IMG/VR virus record: IMGVR_UViG_3300037087_000760
Span: 1 to 64,000 of that record
Strand: one strand, 5' to 3'
Length of the DNA: 64,000 bases
The position numbers and the translations under genes were made by a program. Positions 5,909 to 13,080 of this stretch are shown here, piece by piece (position 1 is the first letter of the stretch; every line of letters begins with the position of its first letter). Below the pieces are notes generated by a model. It ran no database searches, was not told the origin of the DNA, and saw nothing but the letters and a program-made list of their open reading frames with translations.

Positions 5909-6319
5909 ATGAAACATATAATTAATTTTTCGAATTTTGTAATGATTAAAGAGAATCAATCATCTTTAAAGCAAAAACAATTAGAAATAATATTAAAAAC
6001 TAATCCAATGATTGATGATTATCATACTGGAATTAGAGATTTGAAAGATATAAAAACTGCAGAAGAAGCATTTTCAGAATCTATTAAAAATAATGAGAGT
6101 TCTTTTGATGATTTTAGTGTTGAAGATATGAAAGAATCATTAAAGACTAAATTGATTACGGTATATTCATCACATCCAATAAAAAATGGAGTATTCGTTA
6201 CTCCAAGTAAAATGGATGCAAAATCATATGCTGGTAATGGTGAGATTTATCAAAAAAGAGTAAACATATTAGATATCGCTTGGATAGATCAATTTGAAGG
6301 ACAATATGCTAAATTTTAA
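5909..6319 (+). CDS. CTS-like protein with possible ADP-ribosyltransferase-like fold
   Basis: MKHIINFSNF..IKE; ITVYS...FVTPSKMDAKSY...EGQY pattern. Confidence 0.45.
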   Translation: MKHIINFSNFVMIKENQSSLKQKQLEIILKTNPMIDDYHTGIRDLKDIKTAEEAFSESIKNNESSFDDFSVEDMKESLKTKLITVYSSHPIKNGVFVTPSKMDAKSYAGNGEIYQKRVNILDIAWIDQFEGQYAKF

Positions 6320-6957
6320 ATATCTTGATCATTCAATTCGTCCAGTAAAACCTTTTCCCCGAATTTATTTTTTAATCTATCTAACCAATCATCAGTCTTA
6401 ATTTTAACCATCCAAATCTGATGTGATTTATCTTGAGCTTTGGCCTTGCATACTACACCTTCCATCAATCCATAATCATTTCTTTTCACACTATTGATGA
6501 ATTCTTGATTAAGATTACCATGATGAATCAATCTGGGAATTTCCATATGTCCAAAATCTTCTATAAATCTTTTTGGATCTACAAATCCTTTGGTAACAGG
6601 ATTCACATCGAACAACACCAGATTCATCTGATCTTTCGGGTCAATATGTCTACCAGCAAACGAATTTGGGCCATACCATTCACAAAAAACAATAAAATTT
6701 TGAATATTCCTATAATCTTTATTCTTTTTGAATACTTCGGATAGTCCATCTCCATATTTATTCAAAAATAAAGGAATAGCCATTCCAAAATCTGGATTCT
6801 TTGCATCTATCATACATTTACGAGTACCAAATTTATACCATCCTCTTTTCTTTGACCATTCAAAACGTAAATTAGAACCATCCAATTTATCGAAGGCATA
6901 AACCACTTCACCCACTAAACGCTTTCCGTAATAATCTATGTGATCGTATTGTTTCAT
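6316..6957 (-). CDS. RNA ligase (Rnl2-like adenylyltransferase domain)
   Basis: Motif I KLDGSN, CEWYG, FDV, EGVVCK, KIK. Confidence 0.75.
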   Translation of the reverse strand: MKQYDHIDYYGKRLVGEVVYAFDKLDGSNLRFEWSKKRGWYKFGTRKCMIDAKNPDFGMAIPLFLNKYGDGLSEVFKKNKDYRNIQNFIVFCEWYGPNSFAGRHIDPKDQMNLVLFDVNPVTKGFVDPKRFIEDFGHMEIPRLIHHGNLNQEFINSVKRNDYGLMEGVVCKAKAQDKSHQIWMVKIKTDDWLDRLKNKFGEKVLLDELNDQDI

Positions 6958-7232
6958 TTTTCTTTTAATTGTTTTGTTAATTCCTTTCTTCTTTCAATTG
7001 CTTTCTCTTTATCTTCCCATTTTTCAATGAAAGTTTTTTTGAAATAGAATTTGTAATAAATAACATAAAATTTCCCTTCTTTTTCAATAACATATCTCCT
7101 TGTGGTAAATAAAGTCAACTCACTCATTAAGTAATTCCATTTTCCCTCGAAAGCAAAATGATATGTCTTTGTCCCGTATGATATATAGACAGAGAATTTA
7201 CTACCGTTTATATAAAATTTTTTAAAGTTCAT
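6954..7232 (-). CDS. Hypothetical protein
   Basis: Overlaps neighbours in operon-like packing. Confidence 0.55.
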
Positions 7233-9252
7233 TTTCTATTTTTTCATAATGAGAAAAAGTCAAATTGTTTATAGCTCTCCCCTGTGATAATGTTCTAAGT
7301 GTTGTTATAAAACCAAACTTCTCAGCCAAAGGTGATTGAACTTTGAGGATTATAGTCGAATCTGGTAATGTATTAATAGATACTATCGTAGAACGATGTT
7401 TATTAAGTTCACTAATTATATCACTCAAATATTCTTCTGGTGTCGTAATTTCTTCATCCATGATAGGTTCAAGTAAACACGGTTTACCTTTCATATAAGC
7501 CTTCGGAAACGAAATCTTCACACAAGTTTCAAAGGCGTATGGGCTTGAATCCACAACATGAGTAGAACCATCTATGATTGTTACTTTCAAACTTTCGATT
7601 TCGTTACCACCCAATGGACCACTAATCATACATTCTTTAAAAGCCTTTTCGATAGAAGTCATATATTCTCTTGGAATGTTTCCACCTTTAACCTCATTCA
7701 CAAAAATTAAACCCTTTGTATCATCGGATACAGGTTCTATTCTATACTCAATCTCAGCAAACATACCCTTTCCACCAGTTTGTCTTGATAATCTTTCTTT
7801 GTGTGTTACTGGTTGAGTTATTGTTTCTCTATAAGAAACTTTTGGTTGTCCTGTATTACATCCGACATTAAAATCAGTAATCAATCTACTTAAAATCACA
7901 TCCAAATATAATTCGCCCATACCACTAATAATGGTTTGTCCATTTTCATCTATCTTAACAGTAAATGTAGGATCTTCCTCAGTAAGTTTTTGAAGAGCAA
8001 ATCCTAATTTATCACTATCCTTATTTGTTAAGGGTTCAATGGTTATTGAAATAACTGGTTTTGGAACAATCATATTCTCAAAATGGAATGTATCTTTTGT
8101 TTCACAAAGAGTATCACCAGTTCGTAAATCTTTTATTCCAACAATACCACAAATATCACCAGCACCAACAGATTTTACTTCTATTTTCTTATTGGCTTGA
8201 ATGGTAAATAATCTTGAAATTCTTTCTGATTGTCCTGTTCTGGAATTATAAACAACTTGACCAAGTTTAAGCACACCAGAATAAACTCGAATCATAGATA
8301 ATTTTCCAGTATTTTTATCTGTCGAAATTTTAAAAACCAAAGCTGATAATTTTTCATCTTCACTTGGTCTAATTTCAACTTGTTCCGAATCTCTATTGGC
8401 ATAAATAATACCCCTATCAACTGGAGATGGTAAAAAATTCACCACAGCATCAAGTAATGTTTGTACTCCCTTATTTTTCTTAGCAGATCCACACAAAATA
8501 GGAACAATAGAAAAATCTAATGTTAAACTACGAAGATTTTTAATTATTTCTTCATTCGTTATCAATTCAGGTGTTTCCAAATACTTCTCAAAAAAGTCAT
8601 CGTTATGTTCCGAAATAGATTCAATCATTTTAATTCGGAATTTCAATGCCTGATCTAAGTATTCTTCAGGTATTACAGAAACACTATATTCCTGACCTAA
8701 TGTTTCGGAAGCCCATGTAATCAGTTTCATATCTATAAGGTCAATAACACCTTTGAAATTACTTTCACTTCCTACGGGAAGTTGAATCACAACTGGTTTC
8801 GATTTAAGTCTATCTTGAATTTGATGTACTACATTAAAGAAATCAGCTCCAATCCTATCCATCTTGTTTACAAAGGCTATTCTTGGTACTTTATATCTGT
8901 TGGCCTGTCTCCAAACTGTTTCGGATTGAGGTTGTACACCGCCGACTGCACAGAAAACAACAACGGCCCCATCTAATATTCGGAGTGAGCGTTCAACCTC
9001 AATCGTAAAATCAATGTGGCCGGGAGTATCTATAATATTTATCTTATGATCTTTCCAATACGATGTAACAGCAGCTGCCATAATCGTTATACCTCGTTCT
9101 TGTTCCTGAGGCATAAAATCGGTTACTGTATTACCATCGTGAACCTCTCCCATTTTATGATTCTCACCAGTATAATACAATATACGCTCAGTCAATGTGG
9201 TTTTTCCGGCATCGATATGGGCTACTATTCCTATATTTCTGTTAAGATTCAT
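7222..9252 (-). CDS. fusA: Elongation factor G
   Basis: [42 protein letters not shown]; 676 aa. Confidence 0.95.
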
Positions 9253-9399
9253 ATTTAATTTTTATTATATTTTCGAAATTTAATGTCGTTTAAAATGATG
9301 TTTATAAACGACATAATGACCGAAATCAGTCTGTAATGTAGGATATAAACAACAAAAAGTATATGTATAACATATCTTAAATTTTATTTATTTTATTTG

Positions 9400-9474
9400 A
9401 GTCAGAGGAGGGATTCGAACCCACGATTGTACGGTTTTGCAGACCGGTGCTTTTGACCACTCAGCCACCCTGAC
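9400..9474 (-). tRNA. tRNA-Cys(GCA)
   Basis: Full cloverleaf, anticodon loop CT-GCA-AA, T loop TTCGAAT, U73. Confidence 0.9.
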
Positions 9475-9593
9475 GAATTATTCTTCTTTGGATTCCTCTA
9501 ATCTTTTCCTGTCGAATTCTAACCATTCATCCAGTTTTTCATCAGTAAAAGAATTGAGTAATTCTACAAAATCCTCATATAAAGTATCCAAAT

Positions 9594-10214
9594 CTATTCC
9601 TTTTTCCATTTTACATTTAATGACTTATCGAATACTAACAAATATCTATGTTTACGACTTCGAGGTCTCCATTCACCCTCGACATCTTTCACTTTCCCCC
9701 TTGATTGCTTTATATATGTTCCATCTGGTTTTTTAATCCAGAAATCATTTTTGGGTTCTGTTAAACCATAATATTGAAAATTACATGCTTTATATATCGT
9801 ACCTAAATGAAAATCAGCATCAGCATAACTCAATATAACTCTAACTTTCGTATCTTTTCTCAATTGACGAATCGCCCTCGATACAAACCAACTGGTAATA
9901 TTATGTTCTACTTTTTGAATATCTGGATGAACACATAATCTACTCAACTCAAATAAACCCTCTTGATCATTTCTTTCCAATCCTAACATCCCCTTAGAAA
10001 GTTCTGGAACTGGAAAACCAGTGAAAATAATCACACCAACTAATTGTTCATTTTCAAACAGACCGTAATTAAAACCACTTTTAAATCCTCTGGAGATGTC
10101 TTTGAGATAATGAAATTTCAATAATAATTCACCAGCTTGTTCTTTGGTAATTCTACTCACATTGAAATTTTCTTTCATACCCTCATTTATAAACTCCAAA
10201 AATGTTTTTATCAT
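9594..10214 (-). CDS. mom: Mu Mom-like DNA adenine modification protein with CTS-like N-terminus
   Basis: FHYL, GLFENEQLVGVIIF, ELSRL, SWFVSRAIRQL, ILSYAD, HLGTIYKACNF; start MIKTFLEFINE just after late motif at 10220-10229. Confidence 0.8.
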   Translation of the reverse strand: MIKTFLEFINEGMKENFNVSRITKEQAGELLLKFHYLKDISRGFKSGFNYGLFENEQLVGVIIFTGFPVPELSKGMLGLERNDQEGLFELSRLCVHPDIQKVEHNITSWFVSRAIRQLRKDTKVRVILSYADADFHLGTIYKACNFQYYGLTEPKNDFWIKKPDGTYIKQSRGKVKDVEGEWRPRSRKHRYLLVFDKSLNVKWKKE

Positions 10215-10249
10215 GATTGTATATATTAATATACTCAATCATGAATTAG

Positions 10250-10342
10250 AAGCGGGGGTAGGAGTCGAACCCACTATCTAAAGGTTATGAGCCTTTAATG
10301 ATTTATGTTGACGAATCAACAATTCCGTTTCACTCTCCCGCA
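10250..10342 (-). tRNA. tRNA-Met(CAT), initiator-like, with hairpin inserted in D loop
   Basis: AAAGG-CTCATAA-CCTTT arm, T arm intact, 1:72 mismatch; D loop contains TGTTGA-TTCG-TCAACA. Confidence 0.7.
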
Positions 10343-10356
10343 ATGTATTAAAATAG

Positions 10357-10445
10357 TAGCGGATGTAAGATTCGAACTTACGACTTCCTTATGGGAAGTT
10401 TCAGCTTATGAGACTGAGGAGATAGGCCAACTTCTCTAATCCGCG
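10357..10445 (-). tRNA. tRNA-Met(CAT) with long variable arm
   Basis: C1:U72 mismatch, TCAGT-CTCATAA-GCTGA, variable hairpin ACTTCC-CATAA-GGAAGT. Confidence 0.75.
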
Positions 10446-10451
10446 ATGTGT

Positions 10452-10552
10452 GTCCTACTGTTGGTGCGACCAACCTTTCTGGAACTCATTATACCGTAGG
10501 TTAGAGCGACCAACTTTATTAGTTCAATGATATTTCCCTCTGAATTAGTAGG
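10452..10552 (-). ncRNA. Unknown tRNA-sized structured RNA
   Basis: Closed by GTCCTACT/AGTAGGAC; two similar GTTGG-TCGCn-CYAAC hairpins; sits between two tRNAs. Confidence 0.5.
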
Positions 10553-10558
10553 ACTTAG

Positions 10559-10630
<72 letters not shown>

Positions 10631-10635
10631 ATATA

Positions 10636-10884
10636 TTATTTCAATTCATGTCTGCACAATGGACATTCTTTAATTTTTATCAACCAATGAATAGTTCTCA
10701 CTACCGTTTTTTCTGGGTCATCAAAACACACCTTTTCACCATCCCAAATTCCTACGATTGATGTTTTCACAGTTTTACCATTAACTCTTTTTATGTTATG
10801 GTATTGAACTAAATCACCTTTCTTAATATCATCTAATTGTTTACCAATCAGATTTCCGTAATTGTCGTATTTACTTTCTTCCAT
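10636..10884 (-). CDS. Hypothetical protein inside tRNA cluster
   Basis: 82 aa ORF with own TAnnTTTG promoter. Confidence 0.65.
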   Translation of the reverse strand: MEESKYDNYGNLIGKQLDDIKKGDLVQYHNIKRVNGKTVKTSIVGIWDGEKVCFDDPEKTVVRTIHWLIKIKECPLCRHELK

Positions 10885-10888
10885 TTTA

Positions 10889-10920
10889 CAAAGATATAAA
10901 TAAATATTCTAATTAAAAAA
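10889..10920 (-). promoter_or_regulatory. Bacteroidota-type promoter (TATCTTTG with upstream T-run)
   Basis: Matches -7 consensus TAnnTTTG. Confidence 0.7.
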
Positions 10921-10926
10921 TCATTG

Positions 10927-10999
10927 AGATCGGAGAGGGAATCAAACCCCCGTCTCTGAGGTTGCAGCTCAGCACCTATTTACACTCGGCCATCCGACC
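10927..10999 (-). tRNA. tRNA-Cys(GCA)
   Basis: CTGAG-CTGCAAC-CTCAG arm, U73. Confidence 0.8.
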
Positions 11000-11004
11000 A
11001 TTTG

Positions 11005-11077
11005 AGCGATAAGTGGGGGTCAAACCCACGACCTTCAGCTTGGGAAGCTGACACTCTATCAACTGAGCTATTATCGC
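11005..11077 (-). tRNA. tRNA-Gly(CCC)
   Basis: TCAGC-TTCCCAA-GCTGA, U73. Confidence 0.9.
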
Positions 11078-11130
11078 ATCCGTTTGACACATCCTTTGAC
11101 ATCACCCTCTCTCCGTTATATCAAACAGCG

Positions 11131-11202
11131 AGCGAGTAATCAGAATCGAACTGACATCATCGGTATGGTAAGCCGATACACTACACATTGTGCTATACTC
11201 GC
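11131..11202 (-). tRNA. tRNA-Gly(ACC), 31:39 mismatch
   Basis: TCGGC-TTACCAT-ACCGA, Gly-type acceptor, U73. Confidence 0.75.
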
Positions 11203-11277
11203 GAATCAGTACCCGCACTTTCCGCCTTAATTATTCCCTGTTACACTGCGGTTAGGGAGTTGGTTATGATAGACCTG

Positions 11278-11360
11278 AGCGGGAGAAGGGATTCGAACCC
11301 TCACCTGAAGTTTGGAAGACTCCTATGCTAGCTTACGCGACCGTTAAACACCACTCCCGC
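11278..11360 (-). tRNA. tRNA-Gly(TCC) with D-loop insertion
   Basis: GGAGT-CTTCCAA-ACTTC; 19-nt D loop containing GC-GTAA-GC. Confidence 0.8.
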
Positions 11361-11371
11361 GAGTGATTTTG

Positions 11372-11442
11372 AGCAGATAATGAGAATCGAACTCACATCA
11401 AAAGATTGGAAATCTCTTACACTACCATTGTGCTATATCTGC
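11372..11442 (-). tRNA. tRNA-Gly(TCC)
   Basis: AGAGA-TTTCCAA-TCTTT, U73. Confidence 0.9.
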
Positions 11443-11448
11443 GTAAAA

Positions 11449-11553
11449 GGTCAGTATGTCGAATGTATTCGGACTGATTTTCGTTTTGCACATTCCTAAT
11501 CATCTGTCTTAACATCTCAGTTCACCGCCATTGTGCTACCGCGTTTACTGACC
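11449..11553 (-). ncRNA. Unknown tRNA-sized structured RNA
   Basis: Closed by GGTCAGTA/TACTGACC; carries D-arm-like TAGCACAATGG; fills the gap between two tRNAs. Confidence 0.45.
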
Positions 11554-11554
11554 T

Positions 11555-11629
11555 TGGAGCGGGATGCGGGATTTAAACCCGCGACCTGAAGTTTGGTAAA
11601 CTTCCGCTCTATCACTGAGCTAATCCCGC
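11555..11629 (-). tRNA. tRNA-Gly(ACC) with encoded CCA
   Basis: Perfect GAAGT-TTACCAA-ACTTC arm, U73-CCA. Confidence 0.9.
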
Positions 11630-11717
11630 GTGGGAGGCTATCTAAACTCTTTGACCCAATCAGATTTCTCCTGTCATGAGTTAACTTCGCCTTATTAGTT
11701 TTTCGAATGTTTTTTAG

Positions 11718-11789
11718 TAGCCCCGGCGGGAATCGAACCTGCATCCAGAAATTAGAAGTTTCTTGTTCTATCCATTGAACTACGGAGCC
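11718..11789 (-). tRNA. tRNA-Arg(TCT)
   Basis: AGAAA-CTTCTAA-TTTCT, canonical cloverleaf. Confidence 0.9.
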
Positions 11790-11838
11790 ATACTTTATAT
11801 AAACTATTTACCACCATTAAGTTTAATATTAATTATTG

Positions 11839-11916
11839 TAACCCTGAAGGGATTCGAACCCTCATTTTCATCCGTTATGCACAATCGAGTTTAGAAAACT
11901 CAGCCATTACAGGGCT
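11839..11916 (-). tRNA. D-armless tRNA-Arg(TCT)-like RNA with 22-nt variable region
   Basis: Acceptor AGCCCTG/CAGGGTT, TGAGT-TTTCTAA-ACTCG arm and T arm intact; only TAATGGC between acceptor and anticodon arm. Confidence 0.6.
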
Positions 11917-11921
11917 ATTTG

Positions 11922-12003
11922 TACCGATGGAGAGATTCGAACTCTCACTTCCGATGGAAACAAGTTCCTAAAACTTGCGTGTCTACCATTCCACCACACC
12001 GGC
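11922..12003 (-). tRNA. tRNA-Leu(TAG)
   Basis: CAAGT-TTTAGGA-ACTTG, class II variable arm, A73. Confidence 0.9.
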
Positions 12004-12029
12004 TTAAAAAGTTAAATAAGTTGTGATAT

Positions 12030-12124
12030 TGTACACCATACCCAACCCAGAGTCGAACTGGATTAGTTGGGGTCTCGAACCCCGCTTCACACAACCACCT
12101 ACTACCGTTCAGTATTATTCAACC
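12030..12124 (-). ncRNA. tRNA-derived element with two T-arm-like hairpins
   Basis: GGGG-TTCGAGA-CCCC and CCAG-TTCGACT-CTGG plus D-like TACT-GAACGGT-AGTA. Confidence 0.5.
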
Positions 12125-12128
12125 TTAG

Positions 12129-12198
12129 CAGTACAAGCAGGAATCGAACCTACATCCACCCTCTACTGAGGGTACTCTTTCCATTAAGCTACTGTACT
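12129..12198 (-). ncRNA. tRNA-like RNA lacking an anticodon loop (AGTA tetraloop)
   Basis: Acceptor, D and T arms canonical; CCCTC-AGTA-GAGGG in place of anticodon arm; G73. Confidence 0.75.
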
Positions 12199-12262
12199 TA
12201 CACATCAATTTTATTCTAGCTTATTATGATGTGATTTACACTTTTGATGTAAATATCTTTTA

Positions 12263-12330
12263 GTACTCTAAAAGGATTCGAACCTATACTCCTCGCTTAC
12301 GCGAGTGTGCTACCATTACACCATAAAGTC
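12263..12330 (-). ncRNA. tRNA-like RNA lacking an anticodon loop (GTAA GNRA tetraloop)
   Basis: GTGT-AATGGTA-GCAC D arm, CTCGC-GTAA-GCGAG, TTCGAAT T loop. Confidence 0.7.
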
Positions 12331-12430
12331 AACTTTCGTCATTGACACTGACATATCATTTCGGAAAGAACACATATTTTACTCCTTTCTGATTGTCAGA
12401 TCTTACTCGTTTCAAATTCCAGTGTTTTTG

Positions 12431-12503
12431 CAGGCAGTACGGGAGTTGAACCCGCTCCGAACGCCGTGACAGGGCGACATCTTAACCGTTTGACCTACTG
12501 CCT
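12431..12503 (-). tRNA. tRNA-Asp(GTC)
   Basis: CT-GTC-AC loop, G73. Confidence 0.85.
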
Positions 12504-12521
12504 ATGTAGGGGAACATTCTG

Positions 12522-12598
12522 CGGGCCCAGTGGGATTCAAACCCACCTGTTATTCCTGATCGACAGTCAGGTAGACACATCCAGCATCTCCTGAGCCC
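12522..12598 (-). tRNA. tRNA-Asp(GTC), divergent
   Basis: CCTGA-CTGTCGA-TCAGG, 8-nt variable loop, T loop TTTGAAT, G73. Confidence 0.75.
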
Positions 12599-12609
12599 AT
12601 TCATTATTG

Positions 12610-12709
12610 CGGTAGGAGTTGGGATCGAACCAACATATAAAGCATTCATCCTATCAGACTACTTCTGATGTCCATCGGTGGCACCCTATGAACTTTATGC
12701 TATCCTACC
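12610..12709 (-). ncRNA. tRNA-like RNA with intact acceptor/T arm and expanded centre lacking a canonical anticodon arm
   Basis: GGTAGGA/TCCTACC-G, GTTGG-TTCGATC-CCAAC, internal ATCAGA-AGTAG-TCTGAT hairpin. Confidence 0.65.
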
Positions 12710-12729
12710 ATTTATTTTTAGTATCCAAT

Positions 12730-12762
12730 ATGTCAAAGAACATATTATAATGTCAAAGAAAC
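12730..12762 (-). promoter_or_regulatory. Tandem boxA-like antitermination elements
   Basis: Two copies of TTCTTTGACAT on the tRNA-coding strand, 20 nt apart. Confidence 0.5.
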
Positions 12763-12770
12763 ATTATAAT

Positions 12771-12848
12771 TGGCGGTACATTACGGTTTCGAACCGTTGA
12801 TTTTACATGGGTGACAACCATGTTCCTCACCAAGAGGCCTAATGAACC
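12771..12848 (-). tRNA. tRNA-Asp(GTC) with encoded CCA
   Basis: CATGG-TTGTCAC-CCATG, G73-CCA. Confidence 0.8.
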
Positions 12849-12854
12849 ATTTTG

Positions 12855-12985
12855 AGTCGGGAGCAGGAATCGAACCTACAGCTCTGGTTTAGGAGACCGA
12901 AGTAACTGTAACCATCGCCACTCTTTCACAAGAGGGAATATTTAGAACAGTGTTTTTAAGCGTGTTGCCATTACACTATCCCGAC
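12855..12985 (-). ncRNA. 131-nt tRNA body carrying an inserted anticodon-display module (Arg CCT loop)
   Basis: GTCGGGA/TCCCGAC acceptor, D and T arms canonical; insert has CTCTT-GTGA-AAGAG, GTTACTTC then GGT-CTCCTAA-ACC. Confidence 0.7.
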
Positions 12986-12990
12986 ATAAA

Positions 12991-13080
12991 AAGATTTTAG
13001 AGATATTCACCACTGAGTATTGTTTGAAAACAAATTTGCAGTTTGTCGAAGTAACCCAGATAAGTTCACTACTAAATCTT
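12991..13080 (-). ncRNA. Stand-alone anticodon-display module (Cys GCA loop)
   Basis: Closing stem, GTTACTTC, ACAAA-CTGCAAA-TTTGT, AATATC. Confidence 0.65.

Follow-up and report, generated by a model that had tools for sequence, protein, structure and literature searches.

Intact glycine tRNA genes with the "missing" anticodon ACC in a large uncultivated peat phage

[quoted passage not shown] Glycine is the one four-codon box in which A34 is reported absent from all organisms (PMC8007984, PMC6720975). tRNA-Gly(ACC) is listed among eight universally missing tRNAs; phage-encoded tRNAs are said to lack the same genes as bacteria, and these genes are considered prohibited (PMC8007984). The reason for this absence is treated as an open puzzle (PMC8007984, PMC6720975, PMC4928997). 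Natural tRNAs with an unmodified A34 do exist for other amino acids, such as the Mycoplasma tRNA-Thr(AGU) (cited in PMC11066159), in which A34 is encoded in a four-codon box of an AT-rich genome with no fitting deaminase. The ACC anticodon itself has been studied in laboratory constructs in E. coli, namely an engineered tRNA-Gly(ACC) (Boren et al., 1993, as cited in PMC11066159) and an orthogonal tRNA-ACC (PMC11066159). These experiments show that it is chargeable, active in elongation, strong on GGU and weak on GGC. Large AT-rich phages, including T4-like and huge phages, reportedly carry large tRNA arrays that match their codon usage and are accompanied by translation genes (Al-Shayeb et al., 2020), but these sets are reported to use the same anticodons as bacteria (PMC8007984, citing Morgado and Vicente 2019).

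Here we describe a phage in which this rule does not hold. The window analysed is the first 64 kb (64,000 nucleotides) of a single 210,983-bp virus contig from peat metagenomes (IMGVR_UViG_3300037087_000760), which has 30.6% G+C and is rated by CheckV as about 71% complete. The stretch 7000-13000 is found in 15 sequencing runs from 12 studies, none of which is on record as RNA. A first-pass annotation had proposed five glycine tRNAs with the anticodons CCC, ACC, TCC, TCC and ACC, of which the second ACC copy was perfect and carried CCA, and none with GCC. This observation is confirmed, except that one of the five genes is aberrant. The genes of the cluster and its neighbourhood are as follows (window coordinates).

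6316-6957, minus strand: RNA-ligase-family gene (Pfam PF09414, 36 bits), directly downstream of the elongation factor G gene
7222-9252, minus strand: full five-domain elongation factor G (EF-G) gene (Pfam GTP_EFTU, EF-G_D2, EFG_III, EFG_IV and EFG_C)
11004-11077, minus strand: tRNA-Gly(CCC), reader of GGG, Rfam 65.6 bits
11130-11202, minus strand: tRNA-Gly(ACC) #1, cloverleaf with a C31-A39 mismatch, loop UUACCAU, U73, UCC-like backbone with a 4-nt variable loop, Rfam 56.3 bits
11278-11362 (approximate), minus strand: aberrant tRNA-like gene with a Gly(UCC) anticodon arm, normal acceptor and T arms, and an enlarged, irregular D region, Rfam 27.4 bits
11371-11442, minus strand: tRNA-Gly(UCC), reader of GGA/GGG, Rfam 68.5 bits
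11555-11629, minus strand: tRNA-Gly(ACC) #2, all stems perfectly paired, loop UUACCAA, discriminator U73, CCA encoded, GCC-type backbone, Rfam 67.5 bits

ARAGORN and the Rfam model RF00005 agree on the four sound genes, and each of these folds into a cloverleaf on its own (z -4.3 for ACC #2). The aberrant copy lies below the Rfam threshold of 29 bits, matches model positions 7-64 only, is not called by ARAGORN and has a fold z of -1.1. In order to find a conventional Gly-GCC we searched the entire contig, and none was present among the 67 tRNAs called by ARAGORN or the 74 Rfam matches, which lie in several clusters. A permissive ARAGORN run (introns allowed, 80% threshold) produced 427 calls, mostly spurious, and was replaced by a targeted stem-loop scan, in which no GCC stem-loop lay in a tRNA cluster on the coding strand. 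The one loop that contains GCC belongs to an 83-nt tRNA-like gene at contig positions 90792-90874, with an 8-nt loop containing GCCA. We rejected this gene as a hidden Gly-GCC, since its acceptor stem starts A1-U72, U2-A71 and its discriminator is G, so that it lacks glycine identity. About 29% of the genome is unseen, however, and a GCC gene in the missing part cannot be excluded.

A sequencing error at the anticodon, which had been named beforehand as a condition that would refute the observation, is ruled out. Among Logan contigs from four peat samples not marked as the possible source of the record, one sample (X10) covers 10583-13000, a second (X12) 10640-11908 and a third (X9) 10583-11847, each with zero differences, and no variant letters are reported anywhere in the glycine region. 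It might still be argued that the ACC genes are assembly artefacts or decaying or neutral variants without a role in decoding, given that ACC #1 has a C31-A39 mismatch and the lowest score of the four, that an aberrant copy lies in the same cluster, and that single ACC copies inside bacterial Gly-GCC arrays (locus L126) look like point mutants. We consider this very unlikely, as ACC #2 is flawless, two unrelated backbones carry the same change, A34-bearing orthologues in other contigs show compensatory stem changes, and the contig holds no GCC gene to do the job instead. ACC #1 may nevertheless be a weaker tRNA.

The EF-G gene next to the cluster places the phage in a lineage. A tight group of EF-Gs, 72-83% identical to it, lies on phage-like contigs that include LR756503.1, a 735,411-bp uncultured huge phage, whereas the nearest cellular EF-Gs, at 55-57% identity, are from Bacteroidota, which points to a Bacteroidota host. 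The RNA-ligase-family gene occupies the same neighbouring position in five related contigs (L251, L252, L253, L308 and L311), and a role in tRNA repair is conceivable. The closest EF-G relatives (81-83% identity; L308, L309 and L311) lie on contigs that end before, or lack, the glycine cluster, and only LR756503.1 gave a direct comparison of glycine clusters. A search of IMG/VR with EF-G peptide patterns found no close relatives. PHROG and Pfam scans of the 20 largest proteins gave no capsid, portal or terminase, so the phage could not be classified in this way. The record is labelled a provirus in IMG/VR, but composition is uniform along the contig and no host-like flank was seen.

In LR756503.1 the glycine cluster reads GCC-TCC-CCC and is followed by Arg-TCT, where the phage described here has ACC/TCC/ACC/CCC; the two Gly-CCC genes are 80% identical. 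ACC #1 aligns with the Gly-GCC of LR756503.1 at 74% identity, with an identical 5' strand of the anticodon stem and the same 4-nt variable loop. ACC #2 is only 53% identical to ACC #1, and its nearest relatives are Gly-GCC tRNAs, with 81% identity to that of Tunturiibacter phage Tunturi_5 and 77% to that of LR756500.1. All three IMG/VR tRNAs that share its D arm carry GCC, as does every other example of this backbone that we found. A34 has therefore replaced G34 twice, on two unrelated glycine tRNAs within one genome. Compared with these GCC tRNAs, which have the same identity elements and the same place in the glycine cluster, GGU would be read by a Watson-Crick pair instead of G:U wobble, and GGC would no longer have a proper reader. 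Orthologues of ACC #1 that carry A34 occur in further contigs (L301/L315, L314, L316 and L265/L293/L318), and their anticodon-stem pairs differ in a compensating way.

Both ACC tRNAs carry all six elements of the bacterial glycine identity set, U73, G1-C72, C2-G71, G3-C70, C35 and C36 (PMC9976931, Table 1). Position 34 is not part of that set, and human tRNA-Gly with ACC or ICC is charged normally (PMC4928997). The contig encodes no GlyRS-type class II synthetase and no CCA-adding enzyme, so that host enzymes would have to serve. With respect to modification, TadA recognises U33-A34-C35-G36 with a strict preference for G36 (PMC10586758). The phage's own Arg-ACG, at contig positions 72554-72628, has such a loop (CUACGGA), whereas both Gly-ACC loops have C36 and Leu-AAG has A35. 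A search for a phage TadA gave only one deaminase-fold (CDA-fold) gene in the contig, at positions 195282-195626, whose best PDB matches are dCMP deaminases (7fh4, 2w4l, 1vq2, 4p9c) and include no TadA. Of 15 orthogonal A34 tRNAs tested in E. coli only 3 showed inosine, and tRNA-ACC is not among the three that the text names as modified (PMC11066159). Even the broad eukaryotic ADAT handles tRNA-Gly(ACC) very poorly (PMC4928997). We therefore infer that A34 stays unmodified.

The alternative is that A34 is deaminated to I34, either by a host TadA of relaxed specificity or by a phage enzyme encoded in the unseen part of the genome, in which case the resulting ICC would read GGU, GGC and GGA, as eukaryotic I34 tRNAs do in other codon boxes. 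The presence of Arg-ACG, which needs TadA, and of Leu-AAG is compatible with this route, and some bacteria are reported to hold further A34 tRNAs, some of them inosine-modified (PMC11066159, PMC8007984). However, I34 reads GGC well and does not explain why ACC-bearing phages avoid GGC in particular. Inosine remains possible, but we regard it as unlikely.

The codon usage of the phage matches an A34 reader. In 296 crudely called genes, glycine codons are GGT 47%, GGA 41%, GGG 10% and GGC 2% (54 of 3185), and the GGC share of GGC+GGT is 0.035 in frame, against 0.21 and 0.40 in the other two frames, which shows that the depletion is codon-specific. A caveat applies to this genome, as all NGC codons are depleted (TGC 6%, AGC 7% and CGC 8% of their pairs, in addition to GGC) and GpC stands at 0.54 of expectation. 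The loss of GGC may here have a cause unrelated to the tRNA, with A34 simply tolerated, or may have come first and merely made A34 affordable. We considered that GGC avoidance is simply GpC avoidance, and this may hold for this genome, but it does not hold for other ACC-bearing phages, in which GpC is normal at 0.98 while GGC is still the rarest C-ending codon.

To assess how widespread such tRNAs are, we searched with a pattern for a Gly-type D arm followed by the loop TTACCAA. In IMG/VR it hit 50 stretches, of which 49 are called as tRNAs with anticodon ACC, nearly all in loci of 25-38% G+C and often next to Gly-UCC, while the matching GCC pattern gave at least 120 hits. In 185,579 bacterial and archaeal species genomes the ACC pattern hit 69 stretches, of which only 6 are such tRNAs, most of them on short MAG contigs or single variants inside GCC arrays. 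Altogether, the same kind of tRNA occurs in at least 52 other IMG/VR contigs. Among 21 diverse phage Gly-ACC tRNAs, 15 of 23 base pairs show compensatory changes while the ACC loop is kept, which points to selection on the tRNA, although the search pattern itself fixed the loop. Three of the IMG/VR ACC tRNA families, as well as ACC #2 of the window, have no close homologue carrying ACC among 50,697 deposited phage genomes, which probably explains why surveys of reference genomes missed them. Our full-text searches, which covered only open-access papers and preprints and cannot prove absence, found no report of natural phage Gly-ACC tRNAs.

Loci that carry ACC also avoid GGC. The pooled GGC/(GGC+GGT) is 0.074, against 0.213 in GCC-bearing loci of similar G+C, with normal GpC in both (0.98 and 0.96). 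When loci are grouped by tRNA sequence family, the medians are 0.045 for 11 ACC families and 0.182 for 15 GCC families (Mann-Whitney p = 9e-4). Loci that carry both ACC and GCC use GGC normally (L265/L293, 0.245), while L301, which has ACC only, has 0 GGC among 86 GGY codons. There are exceptions to this link, as LR745206.1 has a GCC tRNA yet a GGC share of 0.03, and L314 has an ACC tRNA yet a share of 0.19. The specific avoidance of GGC favours unmodified A34, which reads this codon weakly (PMC11066159).

We propose, with moderate confidence, that the two ACC genes are functional phage glycine tRNAs in which A34 took over from the usual G34. In this view the host's glycyl-tRNA synthetase charges them, A34 most likely stays unmodified, and the tRNA reads GGU by a Watson-Crick A:U pair. 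Together with UCC for GGA and CCC for GGG, the two ACC tRNAs would give the phage an exactly matching tRNA for each glycine codon it uses and none for GGC, which has been almost purged from its genes. The genes and their integrity, their standing in for GCC, the codon usage, the recurrence in other phages and the rarity in cells are established by the sequence data, whereas expression, charging, the absence of inosine and actual decoding are inferred. What is new in comparison with the laboratory constructs is that these are natural genes, kept in several phage lineages and matched by the codon usage of the genome, and in comparison with described phage tRNA sets that a codon-adapting tRNA uses an anticodon thought not to exist in nature.

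The interpretation given in the first-pass annotation is thus partly supported. Its background statement, that bacteria use GCC and that A34 is largely limited to Arg, is correct but understates the case in light of the reported universal absence of tRNA-Gly(ACC). Its proposal that ACC substitutes for GCC is supported, and of its two decoding routes unmodified A is better supported than inosine. Its third proposal, that ACC would resist GCC-specific cleavage, is not supported by any evidence obtained here. According to such a scenario, A34 would make the phage tRNA invisible to a nuclease that recognises the G34 loop of host tRNA-Gly(GCC), which could be a host defence or a phage shut-off factor, and GGC-free phage genes would stay translatable while GGC-rich host genes stall. 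Phage tRNAs that evade anticodon nucleases through loop changes occur in T5-like phages, and the near-complete tRNA set (67 or more), the EF-G, the nearby RNA-ligase-family gene, which hints at tRNA damage and repair, and the near absence of GGC are circumstantially compatible with this idea. However, no nuclease specific for tRNA-Gly(GCC) is known to us, the other G34 tRNAs of the phage (Cys, Asp, Asn, Tyr, His, Phe, Val, Thr, Ala) are unchanged, and a plain codon match explains the data, so that we consider this explanation doubtful. In its broadest and equally unlikely form, we speculate that AT-rich phages run a private glycine decoding channel, purging GGC and reading GGU with an A34 tRNA that no cellular system uses. 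This would make them independent of host tRNA-Gly(GCC), which could then be destroyed, by host defence or by the phage itself, without harming phage translation, and ACC would be the visible half of a codon-level strategy for host shut-off or defence escape.

Natural ACC genes that look functional and recur across phage lineages show that the ban on this anticodon is not absolute. They offer a ready-made system to ask what an unmodified wobble adenosine does on a bacterial ribosome, why cells avoid it, and how a tRNA set and codon usage co-evolve, the sign of co-evolution here being the near-loss of one sense codon. In practical terms, annotation and host-prediction pipelines that assume bacterial anticodon rules will misjudge such phages, and a natural GGU-specific tRNA may be useful for codon reassignment work.

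Within the tRNA set of this phage, A34 appears only in four-codon boxes (Gly, Arg, Leu), while the equally T-biased two-codon boxes keep G34, which fits the view that A34 is tolerated only where misreading is harmless.

Many of the phage's tRNAs with class-I anticodons (Met, Val, Thr, Glu, His, Lys, Asn) are 83-92 nt long and carry a hairpin-like long variable arm, several with GAAA or UUCG loops, and most of them sit next to a normal-length twin with the same anticodon. Long versions of Gly-UCC and Gly-GCC occur in other phage contigs (L301, L315, L318). Three 75-nt tRNAs have Leu anticodons (TAG, CAA, TAA) but lack the long variable arm that Leu tRNAs normally have; these sit beside normal 83-86-nt Leu tRNAs, and the relatives L251 and L252 show the same pairing. 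In addition, three Rfam tRNA matches are about 128-130 nt long, which suggests tRNAs with insertions or introns. A permissive ARAGORN run reads one of them as a TTA (ochre-reading) anticodon with a 37-nt intron. The genome otherwise reads well under code 11. Two tRNA-like genes have abnormal anticodon loops, in which ARAGORN reads a 2-base 'gt' and a 4-base 'gcca' anticodon, respectively; the second has a long variable arm and lacks the glycine identity elements. The positions of these genes are as follows:

Window 10356-10445, and contig positions 70817-70903, 71243-71328, 73120-73203, 89071-89154, 90879-90963, 91234-91316, 156996-157087 and 157419-157505 (beyond the window): class-I-anticodon tRNAs with a long variable arm.
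Contig positions 169169-169243, 169253-169327 and 169469-169543 (beyond the window): 75-nt tRNAs with Leu anticodons and no long variable arm.
Contig positions 89296-89423, 89549-89678 and 155311-155439 (beyond the window): Rfam tRNA matches of about 128-130 nt, the last read by ARAGORN at 155311-155440.
Window 12128-12198, minus strand, and contig positions 90792-90874, plus strand: tRNA-like genes with abnormal anticodon loops.

Anticodons with A34 are not restricted to glycine. Further A34 tRNAs occur in four-codon boxes in phage contigs, namely Val-AAC, Pro-AGG, Thr-AGT and Leu-AAG (L251, 8174-8247; L265, L293, L318; L054, L313; L046, L052; and contig positions 169819-169901 of the present phage). 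Relatives of this phage have Leu-GAG where it has Leu-AAG, so switching between G34 and A34 seems common in this lineage. Other phage contigs in IMG/VR (loci L259, L260, L267, L272, L274, L275, L280, L282, L285, L287, L291 and L299), with a GC content of about 0.35-0.40 and many of them from one metagenome (3300045988), carry ARAGORN-called A34 tRNAs in split codon boxes: Tyr-ATA, Phe-AAA, Ser-ACT and Asn-ATT. These, too, are listed in reviews as universally missing.

The phage also encodes the following proteins:

Window 7222-9252, minus strand: full five-domain EF-G.
Window 9594-10238, minus strand: Mom-family protein gene (PF25680, 102 bits).
Contig positions 151761-153890, plus strand, and 146079-147851, plus strand (beyond the window): TonB-dependent receptor (Plug plus beta-barrel) and NAD-synthetase-like protein.

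The EF-G belongs to a clade of 72-83% identical EF-Gs on phage-like contigs, including the 735-kb LR756503.1; in relatives it lies near ribosomal protein L7/L12, a class-I aminoacyl-tRNA synthetase and release-factor fragments. Its nearest cellular homologues are Bacteroidota, at 55-57%. The Mom-family gene lies inside the tRNA cluster, between tRNA-Met and tRNA-Cys, and in the relative L311 a 245-aa gene occupies the same slot between tRNA-Met and tRNA-Cys. The TonB-dependent receptor points to a Gram-negative host.

Across the whole contig, window included, short palindromes are strongly avoided: CTAG is at 0.02 of expectation, ACGT at 0.03, GCGC at 0.08 and TGCA at 0.29, whereas GGCC is not avoided (1.26). 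GpC is at 0.54, and all NGC codons are depleted in frame. This looks like avoidance of restriction sites plus a bias against C at codon position 3 after G. IMG/VR labels the record a provirus, but G+C and dinucleotide bias are uniform from end to end, with no host-like flank and no terminal repeat; the contig looks like a fragment of a larger lytic-type huge-phage genome.
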